DNA of 61,525 nucleotides. It comes from Octopus bimaculoides (taxonomy: Eukaryota). A model generated the notes under the pieces. It saw only the letters and a list, made by a program, of their open reading frames with translations. It was not told the DNA's origin and made no database searches. The stretch spans positions 19,025,670 through 19,087,194 of the forward strand of contig NC_068994.1 in assembly GCF_001194135.2 (NCBI RefSeq), given 5' to 3'. Positions 30,324-59,136 of the stretch are shown here, one piece after another (within the stretch, counting starts at the first letter, position 1; every line of letters begins with the position of its first letter). Made by a program: the position numbers and the translations under genes.

Positions 30324-30961
30324 CTACACCAGAGTATCATGCTTGTTTTCTGTGTGGAATTTTGGGAGTGACAAGGGAAGACAATCGAGAAAAGAGTCCA
30401 ATTCGAAAGGGTCGTGGGTAGAGTGACTTGCTTTTAAATTGAGATCCATAACACAATGGGATGGACTGATAAATGGACTTTCAGTTTTGTAGTTACCAAT
30501 GCAGGGACAACTTGAACATAGTTTTGGATGATATGCAGTCTTCTCTGGGTAATTAATTATATTGTGTGGGGTAGAGCAGTTCATGTCAACATTTTGGTAA
30601 AACTGTTTGGTGACTATACAAGGAGAATTAATGAAAGATGAAAAGTAATTATTGGAATTAGTTTTTTCCTCTGAATGTTTGGATGTCGTACAGTGACAAT
30701 TAGAGATGAGCAAATCCTCAACAGGGTTCACTGAGCAATGGGAATATTCTGTGGTGGGTATGGGTGAGTGAGGTTCAGGATGTGTTTGTTCAGTGGATGA
30801 GTTAAACAGAGCGGAACAAACAAAATTCGCACAGTGCCAGATTTGTTTGACTAATGATGAAGTGGAATCCAGAAATGTTTTGCATTTAAATATTGAATTG
30901 TGATTTGAAGGTGTTAAAGCTTTCTTCAGTAGTTTATGTTGCACTCTGTGAAATTTCAGTG
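30324..30961 (-). CDS. alpha-catenin-like gene, apparent last coding exon (LKFHRVQHKLLKKAL...FLDSTSSLVKQIWHCANFV + low-complexity tail, TAG)
   Basis: Long pyrimidine tract then ttccAG, phase 1 as required, and 211 open codons in AT-rich DNA. The start fits the M3 end 'FIDASRLVYDGIRDI'. The 3' end (stop versus an internal donor) is uncertain. Confidence 0.75.
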
Positions 30962-31832
30962 CTGGAATACATAAAGAAAAAGAAAATAATTCTTACATTT
31001 GGAAGGTAATGAAGTGGAAAATATACAACGTTTCAACAAATTGCAGACATACATACATACATACAAGCATAATTGAAATTAAATCAGAAATTAAACAATG
31101 GACAAGAGAACAGGAATTACATAATCAACTTCACAACTGTTACTTCTTTAAGATACAATGTACTCAGAGCTGAGTGCTTGTACATCACCTTATTGTTTCC
31201 TTGGAGCTTTTAATGCACACACTTTTCTACAGGAAGATGAAGTTTTACAACAGTGTGTTGACAATATTATGGGTTTTAACAAAAATGACAGAACAGAATT
31301 GTTAATTTTAAGTGTACTCCATTCTTTTACATAATTGGAAGAAATATCTGACTTAAAGTAAACTAAAATACTTATAAATAAGAATATAAATAAAATGTTT
31401 GCCACACATATTTGAGTGTATCTGTCCTATGTACAACAGACCCCAATATCTGAGAAAAATTATGTTATTATGTACTTATATGTGTCCCTATTTCTATCAC
31501 ATTTCATTTTTTGATTATTTTTTTCAATAAGATTGGTTTTGTAAACAATAAAAATTAATTTAATTTAAAATAAATATATTTTATTTGATAATTAACATAA
31601 AGTTTAGAGTTCTACACTATAAGTATTAAGTGTGGATTTCCTTACATCAGTAGTTTCTGAAATCTCAGATCTCAAATACTCAAGGAATTTAAAGAGATCT
31701 AACAAATCTGTCAGAACAGAGGCAGCAGGGTCAACGTTTTGGATGGAGGAGAGAGAGGATTGGTGTTAGAAGTGCACATAAAATGGTTACTGGTACATAG
31801 TACAGAGACCATGTTACAACAAAGTTACTTAC

Positions 31833-32030
31833 ACTGATGAATCTGATCAATAAGGTGGATAACATGTAATGGATTTGGGAAGATGTTTCCACAAGATTTC
31901 AGATCAGACAGGAACTGAGCCACTCGGGAACACTTTGCACGAATAGAACGACTTGTTCTTAGTAGATACTGCAGATCACCTTTGTTAGCAGCATCAACAC
32001 ACACATTCATTTCATCCTCTAATCGTTTTA
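31833..32030 (-). CDS. alpha-catenin-like gene, exon 10 (KRLEDEMNVCVDAANKGDLQYLLRTSRSIRAKCSRVAQFL...IHQ)
   Basis: ttttcacAG acceptor, T|GTAAGT donor, 198 nt, phase 1-1. Close match to M3 'HILEDVNKCVIALQEKDVDGLDRTAGAIRGRAARVIHVV'. Confidence 0.9.
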
Positions 32031-32083
32031 CTGTGAAAATAAACAACAATAACACATGTATATACATATTATGTGTTCATGGG

Positions 32084-32116
<33 letters not shown>

Positions 32117-33349
32117 AGATGTCTAAGAAACTCTAAGTCAGTCATACCAATCAGTTTTGCTCTAGGGGCTCTGAAAAGGACAGGGTTATATAATCAGGCT
32201 GTTATATAACACCCCGTTAAACCCCTAGTGCAAAACCAATTGGTAAGATCAGCTGCAGTGGAGATATAACATTGTACACTTCAATAAATATATATATATA
32301 GATATATAGCAACATAATTGAGATTCAGATGAATTAGGTACTTAAGTTGAAGAACCAAAAATTAGTACGGTATTATCAGTACAACTTCAAAATAAGGTGA
32401 ATAAGTAAAATTATACAAATGTGTTGAACTGATTAAAAAAATTCTATTTATTTATTTATGCAGCTGAGGATAGCCCTGCATTTAAATTGATGTAATCATT
32501 GTATTGTTCAATTAAATAGAACCGCTTGAAATGGTCATACTGCATCACCTCTGGATATCCTATCGCTTATTTTAAGTATATATATATATATATCATCATC
32601 ATCATCATTTAACGTCTATCGATGATGATGATAATAAATATATATCAAACATAAATTAAAAACAGAACACAAAGGATATCACAGTACACGTGTTTCAAGC
32701 TTTATAAACAATCTGTTATTACATCAGCATAGGTATATTATTGATATAAAAGATGGTGTAAAGCTTTCCTCAGCCACAACCATTGTTAGTCCAAAGATTA
32801 CATCACACAAGAAAGAGTACATGTAATTATAATAGGTTTATCACATCTCTTTGAAAAGGTATATCTGCATAAAGGTTCATTGGATTTCAAAAATCTGCCC
32901 ATACTGTACTGCTATTCAGCATAGAGTGAATGTTAAATAGATTGGATTGAGTTTATATTTAACTAACGTGTATAAGATAGAAAGAAAAGAACAAAGGTAA
33001 AAAATAAAAAGTAAAAAATAAAAGTAATAGAAGTAAAAACAAGAGTAATACAAGCAAAAATAATAAAGTTAAATATACATATAAATAAGATTTAGCAATA
33101 TTGGAATAAAGTAACAAAATAAAAACATAAAATAAAAGATAAAGAGATAAAATAATATCAGCTGAGAACAGGATGTTGGCTTGGATGAGATGTTAGGGGT
33201 CATAAATAATTTCCTAGCTTGACCACTAGGGGTCATAAATAATTTCCTAGCTTGAATTAGAGATTAAGGTTGTAATATGATATCATTGTGATGAAAGGTC
33301 GGTTTACCCAACCCACCACTAAAAATTTCTAGCTTTATAAACTTATCTA

Positions 33350-34500
33350 TTAAATGGGTACATACACATACATAGAAGTCAACTAGCCCTGGCAGCAAAT
33401 AAACTTCGACTTGATCCATGCAAGACCAACTTTCTAAGTTATCTCCCTTCACACACTTCAAACTATCAAGTCATTCGATCGCAATTCAAGTGAAGAACAT
33501 TACCTACAAGACCTGGAAAAGACTAGATACCACTACCATCAACTGGCATTAGCTTACCCAGTACCAGCACAATACTTGCAAGCAAAGATGTCTTCTGGCA
33601 TCACATAATCTATAAGTTATCTCTCCAGCTGCCGATATTGAAGCAGAGCTTTCTGGTCCTTTGCCAAGGGAAGCTCTACAAACTTTTTAAAATCCTCCTA
33701 AACTGTCATTATTTCATTAATATAGTAAGTAGCAATCACACTGAAAGTGCTTCTGTATTTAATACCAATTTGCTTCCATCTCCACACTGCAAGCATTCAT
33801 CAAAAACCTTCAGAAACTCTTCTTTTTCACACTACAACCTCACCGTCTTATATACAAGTTTAACAATTGTGAACTCTAAATCAACCCATCCAACCCACCA
33901 CAGCAATTAGTCCTGATGGCATCTTTTCTATTCCAGAACTAGCTCTTATACTTACCAAATTCTTTAATCATTCTATCTACAGGAATTTGCTCTACAGAGT
34001 GTCCCATGGTCTCAGAAAAGTGCTTCCCCCTGACTCAACAAACTGCTTATTTATCCTTCTCATAGCTCAAAAGTCATAGAAACAATAAAAAACAATAACC
34101 TCCGCCATCACATCTCAACCACTAACCAATAAGTTTTCTATACAATCAGATCCTTTGTCACCCCACCATGGAGAATGTTGTCAAAAGCAATATTGTTGTT
34201 CTTCATATTAACAAAGCCTTTAACTGGCATGATAATCTTCTATACTAGTTGCTCACCTATTGGTCAATGTAAAGCTCTCATTTCTTGGATTAAAAGCTAC
34301 AACATTGAAAGGTCACACTACTGCAGTGTATGGCAACAGGCCTTTCTACTCATCCCTAATCCTTAGGCTATGGTTTATCCCCGAGATTCTGTAGTGCCCC
34401 TCATACCATCATAATCATTACTAACAACACACAAAAATGTAAAGATGGCCCTGCATTTCATCCATCTTAGCCTTCTGCACATGATCTACAACCTAAATAT
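33350..34500 (+). mobile_element. Highly degraded APE-type LINE (CR1/Jockey-like) RT relic
   Basis: 'NIVVLHINKAFNWHDNLL...KALISWIKSY' corresponds to RT 'LDISKAFDRVWHDGLL...LSWIKSFL'. Confidence 0.5.
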
Positions 34501-34883
34501 CTCACACACACACACACACACACACTCTCATCTGCGTCAGACACTAGATATTTTACAGAAATTTCAACTGGTTATCTTCCTTGCATGATGTTTTCTTTTT
34601 ATATTTTAAACATCAATAAAGGATGTTCTAAACCAATGTAGTAAACAAGTGAAAACCTTAGTGGCTGAAAGAATTAACAGCTTTGAACACACACACGCAC
34701 ACACACGCACATGCACACACACACACACACACACACACATCATTTTAATGCATTTTTCCATGCTTGCATGGAGCAGACATATTTCAAACTATACTTCTTT
34801 ATATAACAGTGTTTGCAAAATCTTTTAACAATTACTTTATTATGTTTCATTGAAAAAAAAAAAAAAAAATCTATTAAACTTAC

Positions 34884-35114
34884 AAGACATTGTGATGAAA
34901 ATGTCAGGATCCACCATTGTGTCTAGTAAAAATACAAGATGAGCCAACAACTTCTTCCATTCTTTTATAAGACTTTTTAGTCTTGTCGTCATGGATTCAG
35001 ACAAAGAATCAAATGGATTAACTGAAATTTTTTGAATATGTAGACTAACTAAAGAAGAGATTTCTGGATCAAGGCATTCCAAGTTTTTGATTGTCATTTC
35101 AAACTGCTGCACAA
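34884..35114 (-). CDS. alpha-catenin-like gene, exon 9 (VQQFEMTIKNLECLDPEI...LDTMVDPDIFITMS)
   Basis: ttctctAG acceptor, T|GTAAGT donor, 231 nt, phase 1-1. Fits 'SASQLEALCPQVI...QWEKQVRVLTDAVDDITSIDDFLAVS'. Confidence 0.88.
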
Positions 35115-35285
35115 CTAGAGAATAAATAAATATTGTTACGTTAATAACATTTTCTCATATTTTTTTACTTACAAAACACACAAAATCGCTCTCTCTCTCT
35201 CTATCTCTTTCTCTCTCTCAATACTGATGTAGTTACAAATCAAAAAAAATTTTTTAATGTAAATACTTCCTAATCACTTTAAACC

Positions 35286-35643
35286 CAGGGGTTCTCAACC
35301 ATTTTTTATTTATGGACCCCTTTGATTACTATTTTATTCTGATGCCTCCACCCCAGTCAGCCGATGCTTGAAAACTAGTTTTATAGAAACTTCCTTTAAA
35401 ATTCCTATTTTGTTTTTTCACACATTCACTTGTGTAGGTTGAACTATGTAAAATGTTAGAGAAAGAAACCTAGCTGTTTCTCGCAATACATACCAATACA
35501 AACATCTAAAACAAAATCTTTCCAGGGGCCCTCAAAATATTATTGTGGATCCTCAATTTAATACTCTGCTGTGTGACTCCCCCACTCCTCCAAATCTTAT
35601 ATGGATCCTCAGGGGCCATATGGACCCTGGTTGAGAACCCTTT
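35286..35643. mobile_element. hAT-like MITE
   Basis: Termini CAGGGGTTCTCAACC ... GGTTGAGAACCC; TSD not clear. Confidence 0.6.
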
Positions 35644-35892
35644 TGATACCAACCTTGGTTCAATGATACAAATTCCCTATTTTAAAGTGATGTATAGTAA
35701 AACCTTCCATCAAAATTTCATCTTCATTTATATTCCACTTTAACAAGCCTTTCTACTATAGGCACAAGGACTGAAAGTTTTCGGGGAGGAAACAAGTCAA
35801 TTACATCAGCTCCAGTGCTCAACTGGTACTTAATTTATCAACCCTGAAAGGATGAAAGGCAAAGTCGACCTCGGTGGGATAATAAGGACAAA

Positions 35893-36104
35893 GGGCGATC
35901 TTTCGTTTTGATTACATTTTACGTCATTTCTAATCCACGTGCATTTGTTTATGTTTCCGTAAAAGGGTTTTAGGGTTAGGGACGGAATTCCCTAACCCTA
36001 ACCCTAAAACCATTTTACGGAAAGCGACGATCTTGTTCAGAAACATAAACAAACGCACGTGGGTTAGAAATGGCGTAAAATGTAATCAAAACGAAAGATC
36101 GCCC
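35893..36104. mobile_element. Foldback MITE with ~65-bp TIRs and an inner (TTAGGG)n/(CCCTAA)n hairpin
   Basis: GGGCGATCTTTCGTTTTGATTACATTTTACG... is mirrored at the right end; inner cgtaaaagggttttagggttaggg / ccctaaccctaaccctaaaaccattttacg. Confidence 0.85.
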
Positions 36105-36310
36105 AAATATGGTAGTAGAAACACAATTCTTACATATAATCAGGTATACTTTTTTCTTGATGACTAAGTGAAGGGGCTTAAAAAACAGATATGCAAGTTG
36201 CTTATCCAACACAATATCTACGAAGTCATTTTGTCTTTACAACTCAAATTATAAATCATGAATTTTATATCTTATTTATAGTTATTGATAAAGACTTTTT
36301 ACTTAGTTGC

Positions 36311-36699
36311 AGAGAGATGTTAGCACTCCGTCGCTTACGACGTCGAGGGTTCCAGTTGATCCGATCAACGGAACAGCCTGCTCGTGAAATTAACGTGCAA
36401 GTGGCTGAGCACTCCACAGACATGTGCACCCTTAACATAGTTCTCAGGGATATTCAGTGTGACACAGTGTGACAAGGCTGACCCTTTGAATTACAGGCAC
36501 AACAGAAACAGGAAGTAAGAGTGAGAGAAAGTTGTGGTGAAAGAGTACAGCAGGGTTCGCCACCATCCTCTGCCGGAGCCTTGTGGAGCTTTAGGTGTTT
36601 TTGCTCAATAAACACTCACAACGCCCGGTCTGGAAATCGAAACCGCAATCCTATGACCGTGAGTCCGCTGCCCTAACCACTGGGTCATTGCACCTCCAC
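36311..36699 (-). mobile_element. tRNA-derived SINE (family D), near full length
   Basis: Head gtggaggtgcaatgacccagtggttagggcagcggactc...gtttcgatttcc. The tail is shared with copies at ~58370-58670 and ~19900-20130. Confidence 0.8.
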
Positions 36700-37451
36700 A
36701 CAGAAAGATATAATGAGCCAATTTGTTGGAGTATTAACTTTCTGGATCAGCAGACATGATGCTGTATTGAGAGTTTTTCCAGGGACACAACATAGTGTTG
36801 ATGATGAGATATAAATCACTGGTCCCAAATTCATTATAACAGTATTTTATGACTTAGCCATCTGTGACTCTCCACCTCCCCTCAAGAGACAAACATACTA
36901 ATGCAATAAGTTACAATCTCATAAGTAAGCAAAACAATTCATTATTATGGAAGCAGTGTTAGTTCAGAATAACATTCTGTATAACTTACTTCATGAGGAT
37001 ATACTGCAGAAAGCCACAAAACTGTGGCGTTTGTCTTGAGAAAACATCTCATATACACATAGAGCACTAAAATGCACAGAAGAATATCAGTAGATGACAA
37101 AAAGTACCCAGCAGCAGTGGTGGAATGGCTAAATCAAGATTTCTGCTTCCTTGTGCGTCATCAGTAGCAGGTATCCACAAGCAACTGCCCACTTAAACAA
37201 ATTTAGCCTCTACTGACTTAAGAAAACAGTGATTAACAATACTTGAGCTTCTAGGGTGTTGTCATACACTATTTAGTAACGTCTATCATTAACTGACTGT
37301 GATGTCCCAAAGAATCCATTCAGTGACTTTATACATACATAGACACATATGAAGGATGATGGTTAAAACAAGATACTTTCCTTCACAGCTTTGCTACCAA
37401 GCAGCTGGCCAGTCAAAATTTACATTAGATTAAAAACAGAAAGAGAAGAAT

Positions 37452-37493
<42 letters not shown>

Positions 37494-37659
37494 TAGATGA
37501 GGGAAGTGAGAAGCTGTAGAAACACATATATAAAAAAAAAAAAGGTTTGTTGATTGAGTTTGATAAGGATCTGTTCTATCATGATGCTCATGATATTTAT
37601 GTTCAGCACTGATTATTGTTGCCATTTTTCTAGAGCTCAAAGAATATTTAGTCACTTAC

Positions 37660-37774
37660 ACTTTGATCTTCTGGAGCCAGCGATGATAAAACGTGCAACT
37701 TCGTACATATTGTCTAAATGATTGTAAAAGTAATCTTGTAAGGATTTCAGTCTTTCTTGACAGCAATCACTCTG
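37660..37774 (-). CDS. alpha-catenin-like gene, exon 8 (QSDCCQERLKSLQDYFYNHLDNMYEVARFIIAGSRRSK); not in the ORF track
   Basis: ccAG acceptor (NAGNAG), T|GTAAGT donor, 115 nt, phase 0-1. Fits M2 'FREHANKLIEVANLACSIS'. Confidence 0.82.
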
Positions 37775-38430
37775 CTGGATAATATCAAAGAAAACATTTA
37801 TTCAACAAAAATCTTAATAACATGATACACACAGCTATAAATAAAAAGAAATGCATAAAAAGTCAATTCTTCTATTAAACCATATTTTTAATTATGTTAC
37901 ACCCAAAGTTCCTTCAGTGACTTGATGATAGCCCAGGATGAATTGTATACTTTTATAATTGACAGGATAGCATGTGGTCAAAGGCAAATATATCCAACCC
38001 CACAACCCCAATAATGCAAGACTCCTTTTTCTGTTCCTCAGTACTACCCACCTCACCTCAGTTGCAGGGTTTTGTCCTGCAGTTACTTGATGGCTTTGGT
38101 GCTGCTGGTGCCACATAAAAAGCACCCAGGACACTCAGCAAAACAGTTGGCATTATGAAGGGCATCCAGCTGTAGAAACTATGCCAAAGCAGGCAGCAGG
38201 AATTGATGCAGTATTCAGACTTGTCAGTTCCAGTGGAACCCAACCCATGCCAGCAAGGAAAACGGGTGTGAAATGATGATGATGATGATGACGATGATAA
38301 TGATGATGATGATGATGATGATGATGACATACACAACGATTTTTTCCCCAAATACTCAAAGCCTCACACTTACAAAAAGAGAAATAATTTGGTGAAATAT
38401 TTACGTTTTAGAAGAATATTGGCAGCATGG

Positions 38431-38462
<32 letters not shown>

Positions 38463-39952
38463 GGACGGAAGGATGGATGGGGACACACACACACACTAAA
38501 AAATAGTGTCTACAGAGGTGTACAGATTTTATATACTAATTAAAATAAGAAAGTAGTCAGGCGTTGGTGAAATACTATTTATTACTCAAACATATTGTTT
38601 TAGGACTTTCCTTCATCACGGAACTGTGTTCACGTTTACATATACATATACATACACATACGTGCACACACATATATGTACACATAAATACATATATATA
38701 TACACTCACATAAATATGTTTACACTCTTTTTATTTATTCATCACTCTAAGAAGAAATTGATATGGATCCATTTTGATCAGCTAAATTTGATTGGTTAAT
38801 GGAAATTTGAATAATAAATTATGCAAACCCTATAGCATTTCTAGAGAAGTGTAATCAGCATAATGGTTTCTTAAAATTGTTATGACCAAAAATATATGTG
38901 AGAATAATAAATGTTTATGCTTACATGCTTGCAAGTGTAGGTAAAGTTTAATCATATATATATATATATATATATATATAAACACACACACATATACACA
39001 AACATGCATATACATATATGTACACACATACACATATGCACATAGCTGTCTATGCAAGCACAAGTTCATGTATACATATATATATCCATATACATATGTA
39101 TACATACATATACACATATACACACAAACACACGTACATGCATACATACACATACACACAAGTAAGTACCTATATCTTTACAAGCACACACATGTACACA
39201 TACAGAGACTTGTACATGCATACACGCATATATATATATATATATAAAAACAAATAATAAATGAGTATATGCGTATATACATACAGGTATGTGCATACCT
39301 ACATCTACCTGTATATATAGGTGCATATCTGGGTACAGGACATTGCAAACAAAACGTAGACAAGAAAATAATAATAACCAGAGTACAGAAAACACACAAG
39401 CCACATAGAGAACATTTTCCTTCATCAACTACCCCCGTTTTAACACCGGCGTTTCGAAGTGTTGGGCAGGACGCATCATTAAAACGGCTCTTCCCATGGA
39501 CCGCAAATTAAATTTGTATACACAAATTAAACCTGTGCCATTGAGGAATGTGTAAGTTTTCAACCAGTATAAATATATGTATATTATAAATCTTTGTAGA
39601 TTTGGTCAGCAAAGGAAAACAAATAAAAGTAATCAATGGTCCATTAGAAACATGTAACCAATGATGCTATTGTTCACAAATTTTGATATAAAATGAATAA
39701 ATAGATATCCAAAGTTTTATTACACTTTATCACAACCTTGAGCAAATTTAATGTCTGACAAAACATTTGTTAATGTAAAATAGCTCTGTAATACCAAACA
39801 TTTCTATTTTTTAATTTCTTGACCTTTCTTCACCATCTTGTTGAAATCTATGGCTCTAGCCATTGAAAGTTATTTGCCAAATTTCACTGGTTTCAAATAC
39901 TTTTTAATCTTTATAAACAAAAATAAAAATGGTTAAAAAGTAACACACTTAC

Positions 39953-40130
39953 TGTTTCTGGAAATAAAATTGGATCAACTAATCGTTCTAATGGTTCTGA
40001 AGTTTCAGCAAAGACATTGACCATAAGATGAAGAATTTCCTGGTTTACTTTATCCTCCAGTTGATAAAGTAAGTCAACAACTTTGTCACAGTCATCCTCA
40101 TAATTGTTACACAGCCTATTATAGCTGTCA
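39953..40130 (-). CDS. alpha-catenin-like gene, exon 7 (DSYNRLCNNYEDD...VNVFAETSEPLERLVDPILFPET); not in the ORF track
   Basis: ttttatatAG acceptor, ACA|GTAAGT donor, 178 nt, phase 2-0. 'VFAETSEPLERLV' matches alpha-catenin 'DSFLETNVPLLVLI' at the M1/M2 junction. Confidence 0.88.
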
Positions 40131-40269: not shown

Positions 40270-41005
40270 ATACTCTTTTACTTGTTTCAGTCATTTGACT
40301 GCGGCCATGCTGGAGCACCGACTTTAGTCAAGAAAATCGACCCAGGACTTATTCTTTGTAAGCCTAGTACTTATTCTATCGGTCTCTCTTTGCCGAACCG
40401 CTAAGTTACGGGGACGTAAACGCACCAGCATCGGTTGTTAAGTGATGGTGGGGTGACAAACACAGACACACAAACACACATACATATATACATATATATA
40501 TATACATATATACAACGGGCTTCTTTCAGTTTCCGTCTACCAAATCCACTCACAAGACTTTGGTGAGCCCAAGGCTATAGTAGAAGACACTTGCCCAAGG
40601 TGCCACGCAGTGGAACTGAACCCGGAACCATATGGTTGGTAAGCAAGCTACTTANNNNNNNNNNGAAAATCGACCCAGGACTTATTCTTTGTAAGCCTAG
40701 TACTTATTCTATCGGTCTCTCTTTGCCGAACCGCTAAGTTACGGGGACGTAAACGCACCAGCATCGGTTGTTAAGTGATGGTGGGGTGACAAACACAGAC
40801 ACACAAACACACATACATATATACATATATATATATACATATATACAACGGGCTTCTTTCAGTTTCCGTCTACCAAATCCACTCACAAGACTTTGGTGAG
40901 CCCAAGGCTATAGTAGAAGACACTTGCCCAAGGTGCCACGCAGTGGAACTGAACCCGGAACCATATGGTTGGTAAGCAAGCTACTTACCACACAGCCACT
41001 CCTGG
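40270..41005 (-). mobile_element. Family-A SINE, partly duplicated across a 10-N gap
   Basis: Identical ~320-bp blocks on both sides of the gap at 40654-40663. Confidence 0.8.
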
Positions 41006-41283
41006 TAACAGTTATAGTTAGGACAAATATTTTGGAGATTCTTCCTGAATTTATTCATGACAAGGCTGTTCATATGGTTTGAGATAACTGGACCATCATC
41101 TTTATAAAAGACCAGTCTGTGGAGGTGTGTAAATTGTTTTAGGGGATCAAAGATGAATAACTCAATGACATCAGCAATCTCAACACTATCATAGCTCCCT
41201 ATGAATATGTCAAACAGTGGAATGCCTTCCATTTTCACCCAGTAGGGATCATCATGGAATACAAGTGATTTTGTAATATTCAC
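41005..41283 (-). mobile_element. Penelope-like RT fragment
   Basis: 'KSLVFHDDPYWVK...LFDIFIGSYDSVEIADVIELF...LVFYKDDG' corresponds to the PLE consensus 'FDVTMGSYDGAEVCELVG...GLYRDDG'. Confidence 0.75.
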
Positions 41284-41289
41284 AATGAT

Positions 41290-42760
41290 TCACAATGGTT
41301 AGTGAGAGCTGTGCGAGCCATGTACAGAGATGCTGCCAGTAAGGTGAGGGTTGGAAATGAGTACAGCAATGAATTCCGGGTAGAGGTAGGGGTCCACCAA
41401 GGTTCCGTCCTCAGCCCCCTCTTATTTATCATAGTCCTCCAGGCAATCACAGAGGAGTTCAAGACAGGTTGCCCCTGGGAGCTCCTCTATGCTGATGACC
41501 TTGCCCTAATTGCGGAGTCACTATCAGAACTAGAGGAGAAGTTTCAGGTGTGGAAGCAAGGTCTAGAATTGAAGGGCCTTAGAGTCAACCTAGCTAAAAC
41601 CAAAATCCTAATAAGTAGGAAGGTAGATAAAACACAAACCCCTTCAGGTAGATGGCCCTACTCNNNNNNNNNNNNNNNNNNNNNNNNNNNNNNNNNNNNN
41701 NNNNNNNNNNNNNNNNNNNNNNNNNNNNNNNNNNNNNNNNNNNNNNNNNNNNNNNNNNNNNNNNNNNNNNNNNNNNNNNNNNNNNNNNNNNNNNNNNNNN
41801 NNNNNNNNNNNNNNNNNNNNNNNNNNNNNNNNNNNNNNNNNNNNNNNNNNNNNNNNNNNNNNNNNNNNNNNNNNNNNNNNNNNNNNNNNNNNNNNNNNNN
41901 NNNNNNNNNNNNNNNNNNNNNNNNNNNNNNNNNNNNNNNNNNNNNNNNNNNNNNNNNNNNNNNNNNNNNNNNNNNNNNNNNNNNNNNNNNNNNNNNNNNN
42001 NNNNNNNNNNNNNNNNNNNNNNNNNNNNNNNNNNNNNNNNNNNNNNNNNNNNNNNNNNNNNNNNNNNNNNNNNNNNNNNNNNNNNNNNNNNNNNNNNNNN
42101 NNNNNNNNNNNNNNNNNNNNNNNNNNNNNNNNNNNNNNNNNNNNNNNNNNNNNNNNNNNNNNNNNNNNNNNNNNNNNNNNNNNNNNNNNNNNNNNNNNNN
42201 NNNNNNNNNNNNNNNNNNNNNNNNNNNNNNNNNNNNNNNNNNNNNNNNNNNNNNNNNNNNNNNNNNNNNNNNNNNNNNNNNNNNNNNNNNNNNNNNNNNN
42301 NNNNNNNNNNNNNNNNNNNNNNNNNNNNNNNNNNNNNNNNNNNNNNNNNNNNNNNNNNNNNNNNNNNNNNNNNNNNNNNNNNNNNNNNNNNNNNNNNNNN
42401 NNNNNNNNNNNNNNNNNNNNNNNNNNNNNNNNNNNNNNNNNNNNNNNNNNNNNNNNNNNNNNNNNNNNNNNNNNNNNNNNNNNNNNNNNNNNNNNNNNNN
42501 NNNGGTGGCACATAAAAGACACCATTTCGAGCGTGGCCGTTGCCAGTATCGCCTGACTGGCCTTCGTGCAGGTGACACGTAAAAGCACCTACTACACTCT
42601 CTGAGTGGTTGGCGTTAGGAAGGGCATCCAGCTGTAGAAACTCTGCCAAATTTAGATTGGAGCCTGGTGTTGCCATCTGGTTTCACCAGTCCTCAGTCAA
42701 ATCGTCCAACCCATGCTAGCATGGAAAGCGGACGTTAAACGATGATGATGATGATGATGA
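41290..42760 (+). mobile_element. 5'-truncated, relatively young RTE LINE spanning a gap
   Basis: Open 'VGVHQGSVLSPLLFIIVL...ELLYADDL...GLRVNLAKTK'; after the gap, the 3' UTR repeat, terminal module and (GAT)n. Confidence 0.92.
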
Positions 42761-43594: not shown

Positions 43595-43668
43595 TTGCAG
43601 TATAAATCTTGAGTTTCTGCACTGACTGAATCTTGAAATTCATACAAGCTGTTTTTAGCTTCTAGAAG
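43595..43668 (-). CDS. alpha-catenin-like gene, exon 6 (LLEAKNSLYEFQDSVSAETQDLYC); not in the ORF track
   Basis: ttttctatAG acceptor, AA|GTAAGC donor, 74 nt, phase 0-2, which is the phase the next exon requires. Confidence 0.82.
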
Positions 43669-45477: not shown

Positions 45478-45624
45478 CTTAAGGCAAATATTGATCAGTG
45501 GACTTCTACGTTCTTCAACAATGAGATGAGCCACAAACATTGCATGTTTGATTAACAGGTAGATCCATGTTTCAAAATGTTGATCAAGGCTGGTCCAGTT
45601 TTCCTCAGTTAAAGCTGCTTTGGC
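45478..45624 (-). CDS. alpha-catenin-like gene, exon 5 (AKAALTEENWTSLDQHFE...EERRSPLINICLK)
   Basis: ttcAG acceptor, AAG|GTAATA donor, 147 nt, phase 0-0. Fits M1 'LEERLESIISGAALMAD...DDRRERIVAEC'. Confidence 0.85.
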
Positions 45625-48790: not shown

Positions 48791-48866
48791 TAAATTGATA
48801 TTGTTAAAACCTCTCTACCTTTGAATAGGAAGAGAAATAATTATAGAATTAATAAACAATAGTTAC

Positions 48867-48998
48867 CTTTCCTAGAAGACTGATAAATTGTCCAGATTCA
48901 TTGCTTTCTGTTAAGTCCAATGGTAGCTTGTTCAAAACAGTATCGCTAATTAAAGTAATGGTATTAAGGATTTGATAGATCAAGAAATCTCGGTTAGC
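48867..48998 (-). CDS. alpha-catenin-like gene, exon 4 (ANRDFLIYQILNTITLISDTV...GQFISLLGK); not in the ORF track
   Basis: atAG acceptor, AAG|GTAACT donor, 132 nt, phase 0-0. Contains ANRD, as in alpha-catenin 'KANRDLIYKQLQQAVTGISNAA'. Confidence 0.88.
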
Positions 48999-50014
48999 CT
49001 ATATTTATAAGATAAGAACAAAATTAGTTGGTTAAACCAAGTTCAGTAAATATAAATATACATAAACAATTTTTAGTCTTACTGTGAAAATGCTTTTGAA
49101 CTACAGCACTGGTTACTAACAAGCCATTACTTCAGAAGCAGTCCCTGTATAACTAATTCAAATGCATTTGTGTCATCCGTTATGGTAATGCTAAAGGTAC
49201 ATGCCTTATTTTTGCATTGCCCAATAGATTTCAAATTTTGGCACAATGCCAGCTAGTTTGGGGGAGGAGTACGTTGATTATATTGATCTCAGTGTTTAAC
49301 TGGCACTTATTTTATCGACCTTGAAAGTTTGAAAGGCAAAGTAAACCTTGATGGAATTTGAATTCAGAATGTAAAGACAGAAGAAATGCTGCTAACCAAT
49401 TTGCCTGGTGTGCTAATGATTCTGCCAGCTCGCCACCTTAAAAGGAAAAGATGTCCAGAAGCAAAGTTAGACTGAACCAGAGACTAAGTGGTTACAATGC
49501 AGACTTCTTAATCGCACAGATATGCATACATGTGCAGCATTAACCAATATATTAATACTCTGTTTAGAAGAGTTGCTGTTGCAAAGATAAACAAGCTTGG
49601 AGATGAATTTCAGAAATCCTTTACATGGTAGATAAATGATAAAATGAAATTAATATATTCATGTTGGATATATATTTTTATATGTAAGTATATATGAATA
49701 TATTATATATTATTGGCTGGTTTGTTTCTTAGCTGCATCTCAAACAACAAGAACTCAGAATCAGTAATCACAGAATGTTTTCCCAATCTTATTTAGTGTC
49801 AATAGCCACACCACATTGAATCATGCGCCCTCTTGTGTCAGCATAGCTAAATATTCTGGCAATCTGTTTAGGACATATGTTGATGCTAAAATGAAAAAAA
49901 GGTTCTGACTTAATTCTAGAAAGCATTAGAACAGTGGTTCTCAACCAAGGTCCATATAAGATTTTGTTGTTAAAGTTTATCTGCAATAAACTGGTTATAC
50001 TTCAACAATACTCT

Positions 50015-50415
50015 CTTTTAGTCTTTTACTTGTTTCAGTCATTTGACTGTGGCCATGCTGGAGCACCGCCTTTAGTCGAGCAAATCGACCCCAGGACTTA
50101 TTCTTTGTAAGCCTAGTACTTATTCTATCGGTTTCTTTTGCTGAACTGCTAAGTTACGGGGACGTAAACACACCACCAGCGGTTGTCAAGCGATGTTGGT
50201 GGGGAGGGGACAAACACAGACACACAAACACACACACATATATATATACATATATACGACAGGCTTCTTTCAGTTTCCGTCTACCAAATCCACTCACAAG
50301 GCTTTGGTCGGCCCGAGGCTATAGCAGAAGACACTTGCCCAAGGTGCCACACAGTGGGACTGAACCCGGAACCGTGTGGTTGGTAAGGAAGCTACTTACC
50401 ACACAGCCACTCCAG
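50015..50415 (-). mobile_element. Full-length, young-looking family-A SINE in the intron between exons 3 and 4
   Basis: Near-consensus head, CORE-like motif, internal (TA)n and (tttac/ttta)n tail. Confidence 0.88.
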
Positions 50416-50590
50416 AAAATATTTTAATTTTTTATATAATTCCTAATATTTAATCATAAAAATGCAGTAAGATTTTTTTATACAGTGAATGGCTATGGAT
50501 GTCCAGTAGAGTGAAATAAGAATCAAAGGAGTCCAAAGGCAATTAGAATTTAATAATAAGAAAAGAGGATATGATGAAGGTGCAAACTAC

Positions 50591-50773
50591 CTCGGCTGAT
50601 TTGTTATTTGGTTCAGCAATACAAACTGTCAGGGCTTCTTGTAAAGTAGGAAGAGTCATTCTAATTGTATGTAAGCAGTTGGCAAGGAGGTCTTGAAGCT
50701 GCTGCTGTCCAGCAAGATTATCATGGTGTCTCATGCAGATCTTGTTTAGTAACAGTAACTCATCTGACAGCTC
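50591..50773 (-). CDS. alpha-catenin-like gene, exon 3 (ELSDELLLLNKICMRHHDNL...CIAEPNNKSAE)
   Basis: ttccAG acceptor, GAG|GTAGTT donor, 183 nt, phase 0-0. Fits catenin N2 'ACLQHPDVAAYK'. Confidence 0.85.
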
Positions 50774-52389
50774 CTGGAACCGAAACAACAAAAAGATTAT
50801 TAAAAAGAAACACAACAAAAAACAAAGACAAAACTATCAAAGACATATCTAATTAGAATTTAAGTAACTAATCTTTTGACATTTTTATTCTTTCCTTTCA
50901 AAGAAGATTTACAAAGAAGAAACAAATGCCAGATTTGTTAAGGAATGGATACAAAAGTGATGCATAGATTTGTATCTAAGATAAAGCAGTGGCTTCATCT
51001 CATATCTTAGTTTCTTTGCTGAATTCTTCCTTCACGGTGATAGTGTTGATGACTATATAGACCAATTAAATCAATCACATTTACAGTTGCAAAAAAAAAA
51101 AAAATGTGAATAAAGCAAGAAATTGATTAAGAAACATAAGCCGACAAGTCATAAATCTGTAAACACAAAGATTTGTGCACTTGAAAATCCCAACCACGTA
51201 TTCTAAACTTTCTAATCCAATTATTATACCAATTATACCGAGTTATCATCATCTTACAACAATTAATTCTGGCATAAGATGTTTAGACAAAAATTATTTC
51301 CAAGAAGGATTCATCATCATCATCATCATCATTATCTAATGTCTGTTTTCCGTGCTGGCATGAGTTGGATGGTTTGACTGAAAACTGGTAATCTGGGGAG
51401 CTGCACCAGGTTTCAATCTGATTTGGTATGGTTTCTACAGCTGGATGCCCTTCCTAATGCCAACCACTCCAAGAGTGTAGTGGGTGCTTTTTACATGCCA
51501 ATGGCACGTAACACTGGCATCAGCCATGACTACAATCTCACCCGGCTTGACAGGTCTTCTTAAGCACGGCATATTGCCAAAGGTCTCGGTCACTGGCTCC
51601 ATGAGGCCCAAAGTTCAAAGGGTGCTTTTTATGTGCCATATAATAAATCATCTATATTAGACTGATAGGGCCAGCTGTACAAACTTTCAAGACTTAGAAC
51701 ATGCAGTCCTGATCACAGGTTTTAGAGCTGCGGTAGAAGACTCATTTGTTACTGATGCTATGTTGAGTCTGTGGCAGCCACTCAAATCTGAGTAGCTTAA
51801 TCTACCCAGCTTATAACTTAGAAACGCAGGCATGAGGAACATTATATATTTGACTTGTAACAAACTCAAATTTTTTCTTCAGCCTACTGAAAGAGAAAAT
51901 GAAAGCTGAAACAACTAAACCACTCCCAAACAGATACCTGTGATTAGAAAAGACTCTGCATATCACTTGGGTACTTTATTGATCCATAATTGATTGTTTT
52001 TTAGTGTAACAGAGAGAATTCTTCAGTGTTGAATTATAATCTTACTCATTGGTCTGTTTAGTATTGATATTATTCATATTAGTTACTATACAATTGCTGT
52101 TAATGTTATTGTTAGAGCTGTTGGTGCTAATGGTGCTGTAGACTTTGTTATACTAATGACAAAGCATATGAAATACATAAATATAAAATATATTCTAGGA
52201 TCCAACAAAAGTAACGATGGATGTATTATTATAACGTCAATGCTAATGCTGGTGACTGTGGATGGTGGAACATATTGTTGTGATGATGGTGGTGGTGGTG
52301 GTGGTGGGGGTCATAATGGTATGTATCAAATAAAATATTCAAAAACAGAAGTTACTTGTTTCAGGAAAAATGGGCTTCCATTTATTATA

Positions 52390-54190
52390 TGCCATGGAAG
52401 GTTGAATTTTAGTGAGAAGGACAGGGGAAGAGTTTGGAGAGAGTATATGGAGGGAATTATGAATGAGAAGAATGAATGGGATCAGAGGGTGGAAGTTGCT
52501 GTAGTGGAGAGAGTTAGTCAGGAAAAATTAGTAGGGGCAATGAAGGAGATGAAAACAGGAAAGGCAGCTGGACCATCAGAAGTAAGTGTGGAAATGATAA
52601 CTGCAAGTGGAGAGATAGGGATTGTTGTGATGATGGAGCTTTGCCAGGAGTGAGCTGGATGGAAGAGGAATGCCAGATTATCGAGCACTAAATGTGGTGG
52701 TACTGATCTTTAAGGGAAAGGGGGATGCAATGTGTTGTGGGGCATATAGGGGAGTGAAGTTATTAGAGCATGCAATGAAGATTGTGGAAAGGGTGTTGAA
52801 GGGGAGAATTCGGAAAATGGTGGATGTGGATGAGATGCAATTTGGTTTTATGCCAGGAAAGGGGATAATAGATGCAGTGTTCATTGTAAGGAGATTGCAG
52901 GAGGAATACCGAGATAAGGAGAAGGTGTTGTACATGTGCTTCATTGATCTGGAAAAGGCATTTGATAGGGTTCCAAGGAAGGTGATTGAGTGGGTATTGA
53001 GGAAGAGAGGTGTGCTAGAGATAATAGTGAGGGCAGTGATGAGTTTGTATGAAGGGGTAAAGACAAGAGTTAGAATTGGATCGGAGCTGTCAGAGGAGTT
53101 TGCAGTAAAAGTTGGTGTGCATCAGAGATCTGTGTTATCACCATTGTTGTTTGCAATAGTGGTTGATGTGGTGACAGAGAGTGCAAGAGAGGGATTGATA
53201 ATGGAGATACTGTATGCGGATGACCTTGTTCTAATGAGTGAGACAATGGAGGGATTAAAGAAGACATTTCAGAAATGAAAGGAGGCGTTTGAAAGCAAGA
53301 GTTTGAAGGTAAACCTCAGAAAGACAAAGGTGATGGTGAGCAGGGTGGAAAGAGAAATGTTAGTGAGTAAGGTAGGACTATGTGGTGTGTGTGGGAGGAG
53401 GGTAATGGCAAATGCGGTGTTGTGCATGAAATGTGGGAAATGGATTCATGGTAGATGTACGAAAATGAAGGTGATCCTGAAACTGGCAAGAGAGTTTGTT
53501 TGTAGAAGATGTGAGAAAGGAACTGGAGGACTGGCGGAACCAGTGGAAATGGTGAGAGGGTTTTGCTATTTGGGAGGTAGGGTGGATGTAAGTGATGGAT
53601 GTGAAGCAGCTGTGACAGTAAGAGTGAGATTTGGCTGGGTGAAGTTCAGGGAATGTAGAGCGTTATTAAATGGGAAAAGGTTCTCCTTGAAGATGAAAGG
53701 AAGGGTTTATCAGAGTTGCATGAGATCTGCAATCCTGTATGGGAGTGAGACATGGTGTCTGAGGGAAAGCAAAATGGCAATTATGAGAAGGACCGAGAGA
53801 GCAACAGTGAGAGAAATGTGTGGTGTGAAACTATTGGATAAAAGGAGGACTGAGGACTTGATAGGGATGCTGGTGTTGGAGGAATTAGTGGAACAGCTGG
53901 CAAGGGCAAATGGAGTGCGGTGGTACGGATATGTTTTGAGGAGGAATGAGGATCATGTTCTGAGGAGAGTGCTTGAGTTTAAAGAAAATGAACTGCGAAA
54001 GCAAGGTCGACCATAGAAAACGTGGAGGGGATTGGTGGAGGGGGAGATTGGGAGGGTTGGTTAGAGGAGGGATGATGCTCAAAACTGGGCGAGATGGTGC
54101 GAGAGCGGTTGCTGTAAGAGTGAGGTAGACCCCCCCACCACCATTAACGGGGACAAACCCAGATTTTAAACATTGGAATTCATCATCGTC
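52390..54190 (+). mobile_element. 5'-truncated degenerate RTE LINE, second family
   Basis: MKTGKAAGPS, QFGFMPGKG, FIDLEKAFDRV, VGVHQRSVLSP, ILYADDL, LYGSETW, VRWYGYVLRR, GRP; stops at 52653, 53278 and 54016. Confidence 0.93.
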
Positions 54191-54709
54191 AATGGCATAG
54201 AAGTAAACAGGATGAATGGATGGAGCCATGTGTGCATGTATGTGTGTGAGTGTTCATGTGTGTGTATGTGTGTGTGTGTGTGTGTGTGTGTATACGTGAG
54301 TATTTAACAAAAGATGTCATGACAATCCCATATGCATTTTTTATAAATTAAATGTATATATTTTATTTAAAAGATATTGAAATCAATTTTACATTACTGC
54401 AGTATTTCTTTTTTTATACAAATATGAACTGACAATGTTTTATACATATTTTCTCAAAACAAAAGAGTGTGTTTGAATGAGTGCATGTGTGTGTGTAAAT
54501 GTATATGCATATTTACAATTACAGTTGCAAACAAGAAAAAGAGATTCAATGCATGTGGTAGGGTTTATTTAACTGTATAAATCCTGAATCAGGAATCTTG
54601 TTAAGAAGTGAATCATCAATTTTATACAGTAAACAAACATATATCTATCTATGTATTCATGTGTACATACACATAGCTATAACTCTCTCTCTATATATAA
54701 ATATTGGAA

Positions 54710-54934
54710 ATGTGCTGTGCGTGAGAAGACCCGGCAAGCCAAGTGAGATCGTTGCCAGTGCCCCTGGACTGGCTCTTGTGCGGGTGGCACATAAGATGTA
54801 CCATCCTGAGCATGACCGTTGCCAGTACCGCCTGACTGGCCTTGTAGGGTTTTCGAGCGAGATCGTTGCCAGTGCCCCTGGACTGGCTCTTGTGCGGGTG
54901 GCACATAAAAGACACCATTTCGAGCGTGGCCGTT
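54710..54934 (+). mobile_element. RTE ORF end plus start of the 3' UTR minisatellite, running into a gap
   Basis: 'gctgtgcgtgagaagacccggcaagccaagtga' (AVREKTRQAK*), then repeated gagatcgttgccagtgcccctggactggctcttgtgcgggtggcac units. Confidence 0.8.
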
Positions 54935-55538
54935 TNNNNNNNNNNNNNNNNNNNNNNNNNNNNNNNNNNNNNNNNNNNNNNNNNNNNNNNNNNNNNNNNN
55001 NNNNNNNNNNNNNNNNNNNNNNNNNNNNNNNNNNNNNNNNNNNNNNNNNNNNNNNNNNNNNNNNNNNNNNNNNNNNNNNNNNNNNNNNNNNNNNNNNNNN
55101 NNNNNNNNNNNNNNNNNNNNNNNNNNNNNNNNNNNNNNNNNNNNNNNNNNNNNNNNNNNNNNNNNNNNNNNNNNNNNNNNNNNNNNNNNNNNNNNNNNNN
55201 NNNNNNNNNNNNNNNNNNNNNNNNNNNNNNNNNNNNNNNNNNNNNNNNNNNNNNNNNNNNNNNNNNNNNNNNNNNNNNNNNNNNNNNNNNNNNNNNNNNN
55301 NNNNNNNNNNNNNNNNNNNNNNNNNNNNNNNNNNNNNNNNNNNNNNGATAATTATGTGATGTTTAGAAATAATTAAATGCTTACAAACTGTATGATTTGT
55401 AAACATCTGATCACTAAAGTACGAAACAATTACACGGAAAGTCATTCTTATTTACGTTTTTTATCATTTTTTATCATACATGTATATATGCACGCATACA
55501 TGTGTGTGCATGTGTTTGTGTGTGTGTGTGTGCGCGTG

Positions 55539-55589
<51 letters not shown>

Positions 55590-57915
55590 ATGTGAGAAAT
55601 CATAATAGACACAAGTTGGTTGGTTGGAACCTTTGCATTGGATTTTCTAAATGCAATAGGATGCTTAACCACAATGGATCACCAAGGGAACACTTCATTG
55701 CAGTATGTTACAGGGACCTATAAGAATAATTCACCCACAGAAGTGGGTAAATAATATAAAGGTTAACAACTTCCAGCCCTCTATATAATTCGATTCTTGA
55801 CCTTTATTTGAAAAGGACCAGTACTCTACAACATTTTGAATTATACACTCTCGGAGTGGTTGGCATTAGGAAGGGCATCCAGCTGTAGAAACTCTGCCAA
55901 ATCAGATTGGAGCCTAGTGTAGCCATCTGGTTTCACCAGTCCTTAGTCAAATCGTCCAACCCATGCTAGCATGGAAAGCGGACGTTAAACAATGATGATG
56001 ATGATGATGAAGATTATGTTTTTCAAATGCAGTAATGCCATTAGAACAGTAGAAATAATTCATAAACTACCCTTAAAGGCAGAAAAAGTTGTCATCAAAC
56101 AGCCATTGGACTTGAACTCACATCCTCCAAGATTCCAGCTGAGTGCTTTACCATTAAGGTAAACTGTCTGCTGACAATTTCATCTGCTGATTTAGATGCT
56201 AAATAGCTTATTGAAAATTAGTCAGGTCAAAAAAATTGTTACAATAAAGTATATGTTAAAAAATGGGAGAGTAATGCATAGGTGCAACTTCCAAGCAGTG
56301 TAGGGCCTTTTTTTTTTTTATTATATTTAAAGGATATAAATGAGAGAAATTTATTTCTGTAAACTATGTCAAAACCGTTGCAGAAGAAATAGATTATGTG
56401 GCAAAAATGGCCCTAAATCTGTCTTTAAGCCATCATTTTTTTTTTCTAGGAACAAGCAGGAGAATGTTTCCACTAAAACATAAAACGTATAGAAAAATAG
56501 ATACCCAGGTTGGTGGAACATAGATATGATGATAGGCAATTGTTTGGATCAAATAAGAGACTGGAACAGAAGTGATTATGTTCAACAATCCAAGAAAAGA
56601 AAGCTGCTTTCTTGAGAACATCAAACTTGTTGAACCAGTCTTGTTCTAATGTTTATTTTACATCTTCAGATGTTCAATTAACACAAAATGGATGGTGCAG
56701 TTGCTAGGTAATGTATTTATTTCTACTATATAGCACTGTTTACTATCACATGTGTCATTTCAATGATAATTCGCATGTGCCATTGCTTTTGTTTTTCTTT
56801 TGTAATTTGATGGTGTAAGAATGGCTAGAGTAGCAAAATAAAGTATGCCAATTTTTAGTAAATGTAAAAGCTTTTTTTTTTTTCATAAAGTACCTCTAAT
56901 GCATGGTGTGTGGTTAAAAAACTTGCTCCGCAACAACATGGTTTCAGGTTCAGTCCCATCATATGGCACCTTGGGCCAGTATCTTTAACTATAGCCCAAG
57001 GCCAATCAATGCTTTGTAAGTGAATAAAGTAAACTGTCTTGAAGCCCATCTTATATGTGTGTGTGTGTGTGTGTGACAGAGAGAGAGAGAGAGTGTTTGT
57101 GTTTGTGTGTGTGTGTGTGTGTGTGTGCATTTGTGTGTGTTTATTGAACACACATACTGAATGTATGTGCTTTGCTAGTTCACCGATAGGCTGCAATTTA
57201 GTATGGTAGAGATGGATCCCTCAAAGCATTGGGTATTAAAACACCTGAAAGTCATGGATGTGTGTGTATGCATGTGTGTGCGTGCGTGTGTGTGTGTGGG
57301 GGGGTAAAGAAGCTTGAAGCTTGCTTCCCAACAATGTGGTCTTAGGCTCAGTCCCTTGGGTGGCACCTTGGGTAAGTGTCTTCTGTTATAGTCTTAAGCC
57401 GATCAAAGCCTTATGACCAGATCTGGTAGATGGAGACTGAAAGCATATATATATATATATATATGTGTGTGTATGTATAAGTGTGTATGTACATGTGTGT
57501 GTGTGTGTGTGTTTGCATGTATCCTTGTCTTGACATGATGTGATGGCTACAAACTGCAACTGGCGTTTGTCGATATTTCCTGTCAACAAATCATCCACTG
57601 GCTCAGTACATTTGAATTCCTCTGGACTAAATAAATCCCTTACTTGAAAAATAGGTAAGGGTTGGCAACAGGAAGAGTACCCAGCTGTGAAAATCCTGCC
57701 TCAAATACTTCCCTCATCTAAGCCACGCAAACATGTAAAAAGAGATGTTAAACAAATGACCAACAGAATTTTAAACAATTTTAAAATGTATGCTCATTTT
57801 ATATAAAATGAACAGACATTTTAAAATAAATTGTTTATATTTCAGTAACTATTTTATATTAGAGAGCGAGAGAAAGAAGGATATAATTTTTAAGGAAAAG
57901 AAAAATACCCCATAC

Positions 57916-58041
57916 CTTAAAATATTTGCTTACCAACTCTGGGTTGGAGCTGTTCAATTTCAGGAAAGCTACTCTATTTTTAACCCGACCTACAATCATA
58001 GGTAATTCTTTGAGTTCTGAGCTACTGGCTATAATTAACAC
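57916..58041 (-). CDS. alpha-catenin-like gene, exon 2 (VLIIASSSELKEL...PELVSKYFK)
   Basis: ttttctttttacAG acceptor, AAG|GTATGG donor, 126 nt, phase 0-0. A second in-frame donor lies at 57934. Confidence 0.78.
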
Positions 58042-58980
58042 CTGTAAAAAGAAAAATAAATAAATGAATATATCATATTACTATCTTTAGATATCAAGGT
58101 TAATAGAGTAATCAGTGCAGGCATGGCTATATGGTAAGAAGTTTGTTTTTGAACCACATATTCCAGGTTCAGTCCTACTACATGGCACATGGGGCAAGTG
58201 TTTTATACTATAGCTTCAGTGAGTGGATTTGGGAGATGGAAACTGAAAGAAGCCCATCATATATATATCATTTTATGTTGACAGCATGGAATTTGACTGC
58301 TACTTCTGGCCAGTCAAATGATCATGTAAACTTTGACTCCCTTGTTCACATGTGGTCTCTTCATTGGTTTGTGGTTCCATATTGACTCAACGATCGTGAC
58401 CCAATTCCTGGCTGCATGCTGTGTCCTTGAGCGAGACACTTTGTTTCATATTTCTCCAGTCTACTCAGTTGGCAAAAATAAGTTGTACCTATATTTCAAA
58501 GAGGCCAACCTTGTCACTCTGTGTCACGCTGAATCTCCTTGAAAATTACATTAAGGGTATGTGTGTCTGTGGTGTGCTCAGCCACTTGCACGTTAATTTC
58601 ATGAGCAGGCTGTTCCACTGATTGGATCAACTGGAACCCTCATCGTTATAACTGACGGAGTACCAGTTAGTTATTGACTCAACATTACTCTGATATTCCA
58701 CCAAGATACACACCTGAGCTATAACACTTTAATACACTCCCAACAACTATCATTGACACAATACATCTTAGTACAAAAATAATACAGATAACACAAGAGG
58801 TCTCACAACTAAATTCTCTTCATACCTTAAATAATCCACACTAACACATCTAGAAAACTCAATGTGGTCTGTGGTTACTCAATTTGCAACAAAGAACAGC
58901 CTATCTCCCTACCATTTTAAAAAGGAGCTGTTAGAAAATGAAGTCCTTAAATGTACAAACAAAAATGCATAGATGTATAC

Positions 58981-59136
58981 CTGAAATGTCTGTTGCAGAA
59001 CTTCTTTGGAAGCATTAATTAACTGTTTGCACATGCCACTGCTTGCATCATGCTCCAGTTGATTCATAGTTCTATAAATTCCATTACTGGCATCCTGCAA
59101 TTGTTCACAGGCTTGGGACATTTGAGCTTTCAGTGA
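58981..59136 (-). CDS. alpha-catenin/vinculin-superfamily gene, first visible exon (SLKAQMSQACEQL...EVLQQTFQ)
   Basis: Pyrimidine tract then aacAG acceptor, GTATAC donor, 156 nt, phase 0-0. Resembles the alpha-catenin N1 segment 'AVEDVRKQGDLMK...NMVRAARALLSAVTRLLILAD'. Confidence 0.8.

Follow-up and report, generated by a model that had tools for sequence, protein, structure and literature searches.

What kind of protein is encoded by a chain of short minus-strand exons in the genome of Octopus bimaculoides whose product resembles alpha-catenin only weakly, and to which branch of the vinculin superfamily does it belong? The exons lie in a stretch of 61,525 nucleotides of contig NC_068994.1 (the window), between window positions 59136 and 30324. 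A preliminary description of this DNA had taken them for a hidden 11-exon gene, and for an extra, poorly characterised paralog rather than the ortholog of alpha-catenin, alpha-catulin or vinculin. The explanation that best accounts for the whole of the data, and that we hold to be very probably correct, is that they are exons 3–13 of LOC106874078, a gene for a member of a fourth clade of the superfamily that has the N and M head and is without the actin-binding tail, and whose product would serve as an adaptor.

The eleven exons could be rebuilt from the sequence exactly as first proposed, splicing into one frame of 2178 nt that comprises 725 codons and a TAG stop. All rebuilt introns read GT...AG with pyrimidine-rich acceptors, the end phases of the window exons run 0,0,0,0,0,2,0,1,1,1, and the catenin landmarks ANRD, VFAETSEPL, LECLDPEI and LEDEMNVCVDAANKGD...SIRAKCSRV are present in the product. 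Given a stop-codon frequency of 0.064 on the minus strand, the chance of a 726-codon open frame is P ~1e-21, and that of the 212-codon last exon alone P ~8e-7. The full model is 100% identical over the entire query to the RefSeq "uncharacterized protein LOC106874078" (O. bimaculoides, 809 amino acids (aa)); together with the stop-codon statistics, this identity excludes a chance origin of the frame. It also means that the gene, though unnamed, was already annotated and therefore not hidden. The count of eleven exons holds for the window, but the coding region has 13 exons spread over ~62 kb. The window frame opens at a splice acceptor (..aacag/TCACTG, the slash marking the junction) and not at a start codon, and the coding region continues upstream past the window on the same contig (C14) for two more exons, of which exon 1 (C14:19118090-19118001) carries the ATG and exon 2 occupies C14:19098354-19098193. 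A literature search found no mention of LOC106874078 or LOC115219168.

The domain content of the product is that of the superfamily. It matched the Pfam Vinculin profile (PF01044) at 131.8 bits against a cut-off of 38.1, with residues 20-570 on profile positions 7-535 of 852 (the window-only model reached 91.7 bits), and phmmer against the PDB aligned it to the N2 and M domains of alphaE-catenin, the ANRD motif of exon 6 lying on KANRD in N2. An AlphaFold model, built from a 26-sequence alignment, was all helical over residues 20-652, with a predicted local distance difference test score (pLDDT) of 80-95, and disordered over residues 654-809 (pLDDT <50). As shown by this predicted model, residues ~20-652 form an alpha-catenin-type head of N (VH1) and M (M1-M3) helical bundles. 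With Foldseek, the model came closest to a sponge homolog of vinculin, to full-length alphaE-catenin and to vinculin itself (E 2e-13 to 1e-8); the VH1 domain of alpha-catenin was matched with a TMt of 0.71-0.80 and the M1-M3 ‘force-sensing’ region of alphaN-catenin with a TMt of 0.75. The remaining residues, 654-809, constitute a Ser/Pro/Thr/Asn/His/Cys-rich disordered tail ending ...DTLV. The five-helix actin-binding tail (VH3, or actin-binding domain) was not found in the octopus protein, the C-terminus being disordered and the Pfam match ending at profile position 535/852. Relative to alphaE- and alphaN-catenin (CTNNA1/2), the predicted N and M fold (Foldseek E ~2e-13; TMt 0.63-0.75) and recognisable sequence landmarks are held in common, whereas identity is ~18%, the actin-binding domain is missing and the octopus protein falls in a separate clade.

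The gene is maintained in other cephalopods. The ortholog of Argonauta hians has 822 aa (62% identity) and is encoded by the same 13 coding pieces within 10.8 kb, and that of the cuttlefish Acanthosepion pharaonis has 724 aa (43-45% identity). The octopus head is 67% identical to that of Argonauta and 46% identical to that of the cuttlefish; for the tail region, the values are 43% and 24%. All three proteins nonetheless have a disordered tail of this kind, rich in Ser, Pro, Thr, Asn, His and Cys, and end alike, with ...KHDTLV in octopus and Argonauta and ...PHNTLV in the cuttlefish, so that H(D/N)TLV is invariant in 3/3. As a sequence pattern only, the ...TLV end fits the class I PDZ-ligand consensus X-[S/T]-X-hydrophobic.

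The cuttlefish ortholog was used as a phmmer query against 1.84 billion cluster representatives, which yielded 59 matches. After the cephalopods, the best of these were proteins of ~1500 aa (E 1e-63 to 1e-40), canonical alpha-catenins reaching only ~1e-9. The ~1500-aa proteins occur in bivalves, gastropods, Lingula, a nemertean, an annelid, amphioxus, a starfish, a crinoid and a hemichordate; related vertebrate entries came from elephant shark, gars, arowana, a deep-sea eel, whitefish and softshell turtle, and no mammalian sequence was among the 59 matches. One arthropod match is labelled ‘serendipity locus protein alpha’ and matches PF05482 (Serendipity_A) at E 9e-40; several others that bear no such name match PF05482 as well. 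The ~1500-aa proteins are named inconsistently, as ‘vinculin-like’, ‘catenin alpha-1 isoform X2’, ‘CTNNA1’, ‘Vinculin’ or ‘uncharacterized’. Head-only products of ~660-780 aa, which could be short isoforms, are also listed in Glandiceps, Callorhinchus and Scleropages.

A maximum-likelihood tree (IQ-TREE, LG+C20) of 53 sequences over 592 head columns resolved the superfamily into four parts. Vinculins formed one clade (97/93); alpha-catenin and alpha-catulin were grouped together (100/100), each being monophyletic; and a fourth clade of 32 sequences (100/100) brought the cephalopod proteins together with the ~1500-aa forms, the proteins of vertebrates and the Sry-alpha-like proteins of arthropods. 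Within it, the cephalopods had the other molluscs as their sister group (88/80), and their stem measured 1.41 substitutions per site. Approximately unbiased (AU) tests rejected a union of the cephalopod proteins with alpha-catulin (p 3e-35) and with alpha-catenin (p 8e-49). Judged from sequence, LOC106874078 is the cephalopod representative of an old fourth clade that is widespread in bilaterians and includes insect Serendipity-alpha and Spitting image. A distinct superfamily clade of Sry-alpha and Spitting image, with uncharacterised zebrafish and Xenopus members, was described by Zheng et al. in 2013 (PMC3820746). Miller et al. 2013 are cited in a 2026 paper (PMC13245172) for an ‘uncharacterized alpha-catenin-like clade’, which may or may not be the fourth clade recovered here.

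These results bear out the preliminary description in its central point, that the gene encodes a divergent additional member of the family and not the ortholog of alpha-catenin, alpha-catulin or vinculin. Of the checks that it had proposed, the Pfam Vinculin profile, structure prediction, a tree and a search for the canonical orthologs at other loci all came out in its favour. Its term ‘extra paralog’ needs amending: the protein is indeed an additional, poorly characterised family member, but it is the cephalopod form of an old clade and not a lineage-specific copy.

The closest relatives outside the cephalopods are the ~1500-aa proteins (Haliotis XP_067657935, Lingula XP_013384611, Ylistrum LOC132553356, Branchiostoma, Asterias, Pelodiscus LOC102459754). 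They are 24-30% identical to the cephalopod proteins over the ~560-aa head and have the motifs HSMxVAH and LExxVNxALLxLxVDVFxETxEPLERL in common with them. In contrast, they possess an extra ~800 aa that ends in a domain homologous to the actin-binding tail of alpha-catenin, of alpha-catulin and of vinculin, while the cephalopod proteins stop after the head and a short disordered tail. A profile built from the tail of the ~1500-aa forms detected single octopus tail exons of alpha-catulin (E 4e-14), vinculin (6e-9 and 4e-7) and alpha-catenin (4e-8). The same profile found no match on either strand of the whole 61.5-kb window and none in the Argonauta locus, in which the stop codon is followed after 7 kb by the start of an unrelated dehydrogenase gene; genome-wide searches returned three tail-bearing loci only, and no fourth tail. 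On these comparisons, the cephalopod copies are without the C-terminal half of the ~1500-aa forms, the actin-binding tail included. The arthropod members of the fourth clade likewise have no tail domain, and because most other lineages retain it, the two losses look independent.

A scenario for this history, on which we are evenly divided, is that in cephalopods, after their split from other molluscs and under strongly accelerated sequence change, an ancient actin-binding protein of the vinculin/alpha-catenin type, ~1500 aa long, was turned into a tail-less adaptor of ~800 aa whose new, disordered C-terminus ends in a PDZ-ligand-like TLV. This would parallel the independent truncation that gave rise to Sry-alpha and Spitting image (Spt) in arthropods, and on this view the fourth clade would represent a cytoskeletal linker ancestral to bilaterians.

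The other members of the superfamily are located elsewhere in the octopus genome. A six-frame scan with the Vinculin profile found three multi-exon loci besides the one on C14. The locus at C2:25.906-25.959 Mb is alpha-catenin, its exons matching, over residues 27-857, alpha-catenins from insects and shark at 46-94% identity; that at C7:50.23-50.35 Mb is vinculin, which matches vinculins and whose last exon ends ...YTIRWIRKRPWY; and that at C1:191.886-192.043 Mb is the RefSeq "alpha-catulin isoform X1 [Octopus bimaculoides]" of 785 aa (exon matches 97-100%). Two identities for LOC106874078 were considered and rejected. It is not vinculin, for which the extra D2 bundle pair and the tail ...RWVRKxPWY served as criterion: vinculins form their own clade, and the octopus has its vinculin on C7. 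Nor is it alpha-catenin, union with which the AU test rejects, and the true copy of which is on C2.

Several points weigh against our reading. The splice junctions are based on canonical sites, the RefSeq model and collinearity across species, and not on transcripts; four short database matches were discarded as junction evidence, being single-exon open reading frames (ORFs) that read into introns of cuttlefish genomic contigs and not spliced transcripts. The octopus protein gave no match to PF05482 at E <= 0.01, a model that matches the insect members and also the abalone (E 2e-16) and mussel (E 3e-10) relatives; as the model covers insect-type proteins, the miss argues for divergence and not against membership of the clade. 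That the cephalopods belong to the fourth clade is more certain than where they stand in it, because the support for their position is moderate and their stem is long. Exon-by-exon genome searches are insensitive in this fast-evolving family (the abalone protein found 1 of 13 exons), so a highly diverged second fourth-clade gene, or a detached tail gene, could have escaped them. The functional side of the reading, too, can be put only conditionally. The protein would be a cortical or junctional adaptor and not a classical cadherin-actin link; its bundle head would provide protein-protein contacts and, by analogy, possibly direct contact with F-actin, and the C-terminal T-L-V may act as a class I PDZ ligand, by which the protein would be anchored to a PDZ scaffold.

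The insensitivity of the exon-level searches and the 88/80 support for the mollusc sister grouping would also suit a different history, in which LOC106874078 is a cephalopod-specific extra paralog beside a canonical ~1500-aa ortholog that has gone undetected elsewhere in the genome. We regard this as improbable. Three independent genome-wide searches, with the Pfam Vinculin profile, the entire abalone protein and the scallop tail, recovered the loci on C1, C2, C7 and C14 only; the 59 matches contain no second cephalopod cluster; and a search of 5.8 billion proteins returned only three cephalopod proteins. Still less likely is that the locus is in decay, a pseudogene or relic that arose by duplication from alpha-catenin or from a fourth-clade gene of ~1500 aa. 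The length of the cephalopod stem, the loss of the actin-binding tail and the poor conservation of the tail region are what decay would leave, but the 809-codon frame is intact over 13 exons with every splice site canonical, Argonauta and the cuttlefish preserve the architecture, the number of exons and the C-terminal motif, and the head is confidently predicted to fold and retains both its identity to those orthologs and invariant residues throughout. That the gene is the octopus ortholog of alpha-catulin (CTNNAL1), a divergent alpha-catenin relative of the same superfamily, comparable length (~730-790 aa) and likewise weak similarity to alpha-catenin, is already refuted by the tree, in which alpha-catulins are a clade apart (100/100), adjacent to alpha-catenin, and by the separate locus on C1, which retains the C-terminal tail domain, and both proteins are present side by side in cuttlefish, Lingula, abalone, hemichordate, crinoid and horseshoe crab.

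Returning to the fourth-clade assignment, the best-studied relatives of the octopus protein are Sry-alpha and Spt, which act in cellularisation in Drosophila (PMC3820746). There, Sry-alpha at full length was reported to co-sediment with F-actin, as was a fragment of Spt from the M region, and the proteins are localised to the cortex (PMC3820746). Direct actin contact through the octopus head is possible on the strength of this co-sedimentation. Besides clade membership, the octopus protein has in common with Sry-alpha and Spt an alpha-catenin-like helical-bundle head and the lack of a vinculin-type actin-binding tail. It differs in retaining the full N (VH1) domain, in matching Pfam Vinculin and not PF05482, and in its cephalopod-specific disordered tail ending TLV.

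The exons within the window are listed in Table 1. Exon 9 is the best conserved and is the sole exon that was detected with the ~1500-aa abalone protein. Three gaps of undetermined bases (N) interrupt the introns: one at 54936-55346, between the exons at 57916 and 50773, and two, at 40655-40664 and 41664-42503, in the intron that separates the exon at 43595 from that at 40130. Neither the Argonauta hians nor the Acanthosepion pharaonis ortholog has added residues at the two gap-bearing junctions (KYFK/ELS... and ...C/N/DSYNRLC); the frame therefore runs on unbroken, and the gaps conceal no coding sequence. The ORF at 57386-57700 (-) was rejected as an exon: it is intronic, is missing from the orthologs and is not in the RefSeq product.

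Table 1. Coding exons of LOC106874078 in the window, in order of transcription, with the sequence each encodes and the evidence for it.
Feature	Position	Strand	Encoded sequence	End phase	Remarks	Evidence
Coding exon 3	58981..59136	-	SLKAQMSQACEQ...QQTFQ	0	starts at acceptor, no ATG	splice sites and frame; 100% RefSeq identity; cuttlefish collinearity
Coding exon 4	57916..58041	-	VLIIASSSELKEL...SKYFK	0		splice sites; cuttlefish collinearity; RefSeq identity
Coding exon 5	50591..50773	-	ELSDELLLLNKICMRHH...NNKSAE	0	411-N gap in upstream intron	splice sites; orthologs; RefSeq identity
Coding exon 6	48867..48998	-	ANRDFLIYQ...SLLGK	0		splice sites; PDB phmmer alignment; cuttlefish collinearity
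Coding exon 7	45478..45624	-	AKAALTEENW...IKHAMFVAH...ICLK	0	M region begins	splice sites; cuttlefish collinearity
Coding exon 8	43595..43668	-	LLEAKNSLYEFQDSVSAETQDLYC + 2 nt	2	840-N and 10-N gaps in downstream intron	splice sites; orthologs
Coding exon 9	39953..40130	-	..DSYNRLCNNYEDDCDK...VNVFAETSEPLERLVDPILFPET	0		splice sites; cuttlefish collinearity; genome search
Coding exon 10	37660..37774	-	QSDCCQERLKSLQDYFYNHLDNMYEVARFIIAGSRRSK + 1 nt	1		splice sites; cuttlefish collinearity
Coding exon 11	34884..35114	-	..VQQFEMTIKNLECLDPEISS...DPDIFITMS + 1 nt	1	M2/M3 bundles	splice sites; PDB phmmer; cuttlefish collinearity
Coding exon 12	31833..32030	-	..KRLEDEMNVCVDAANKGDLQYLLRTSRSIRAKCSRVAQFL...IHQ + 1 nt	1	M3 bundle	splice sites; PDB phmmer; cuttlefish collinearity
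Terminal coding exon 13	30324..30961	-	...ENKHDTLV, then TAG		last head helix, then ~155-aa disordered tail	stop codon; pLDDT; ortholog C-termini; composition; open-frame probability

Some further features of the locus were observed. The exon at 37774 has a tandem acceptor, CAG/CAG (..tatccag/CAG/AGT..; window 37774-37769), the second AG of which would remove one Gln; the RefSeq product uses the first. Flanking the 10-N gap, 323 bp at 40332-40654 are identical to 323 bp at 40665-40987 (323/323), all intronic; this is most likely an overlap left unmerged by gap closing and not a real tandem duplication. Retrotransposon remnants lie in the introns antisense to the gene, at 52634-54016 (+) and 41269-41661 (+). 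The former, in the intron between 57916 and 50773, consists of an ORF at 52634-53278 matching RVT_1 (E 2e-24) and an ORF at 53279-54016 matching a PHD finger (E 3.5e-6); the latter is a reverse-transcriptase fragment (E 4e-15) that extends into the 840-N gap. At 15364-15783 (-), downstream of the gene, there is an open frame of 139 aa with a match to the ISXO2-like DDE transposase domain (PF12762, E 7e-10), probably left over from a transposon. Nothing else in window positions 1-30300, a region full of microsatellites and repeats, could be recognised as a protein-coding gene. The Argonauta locus is BAAFZT010000037.1:4710523-4741308, where the gene is neighboured by an ADAM-type metalloprotease upstream and a short-chain dehydrogenase downstream; octopus introns are ~6x larger, largely through repeats, and a tblastx comparison between the flanks of the Argonauta gene and the window returned nothing beyond simple-repeat noise.

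Taken together, LOC106874078 adds a new and divergent member to a clade that was known but has been little studied; nothing is overturned by it, and no new mechanism is shown. Studies of the family usually treat three branches, vinculin, alpha-catenin and alpha-catulin, and the octopus locus adds a member of a fourth, for which, widespread as it is, there are almost no functional data, and those only from Drosophila Sry-alpha and Spt. The locus links these insect proteins, the scattered and inconsistently named ~1500-aa ‘vinculin-like’ proteins and a truncated, fast-evolving cephalopod form. It thereby provides a better name for the gene than ‘uncharacterized protein’, and a concrete case of domain loss for the biology of cell junctions and the cell cortex.

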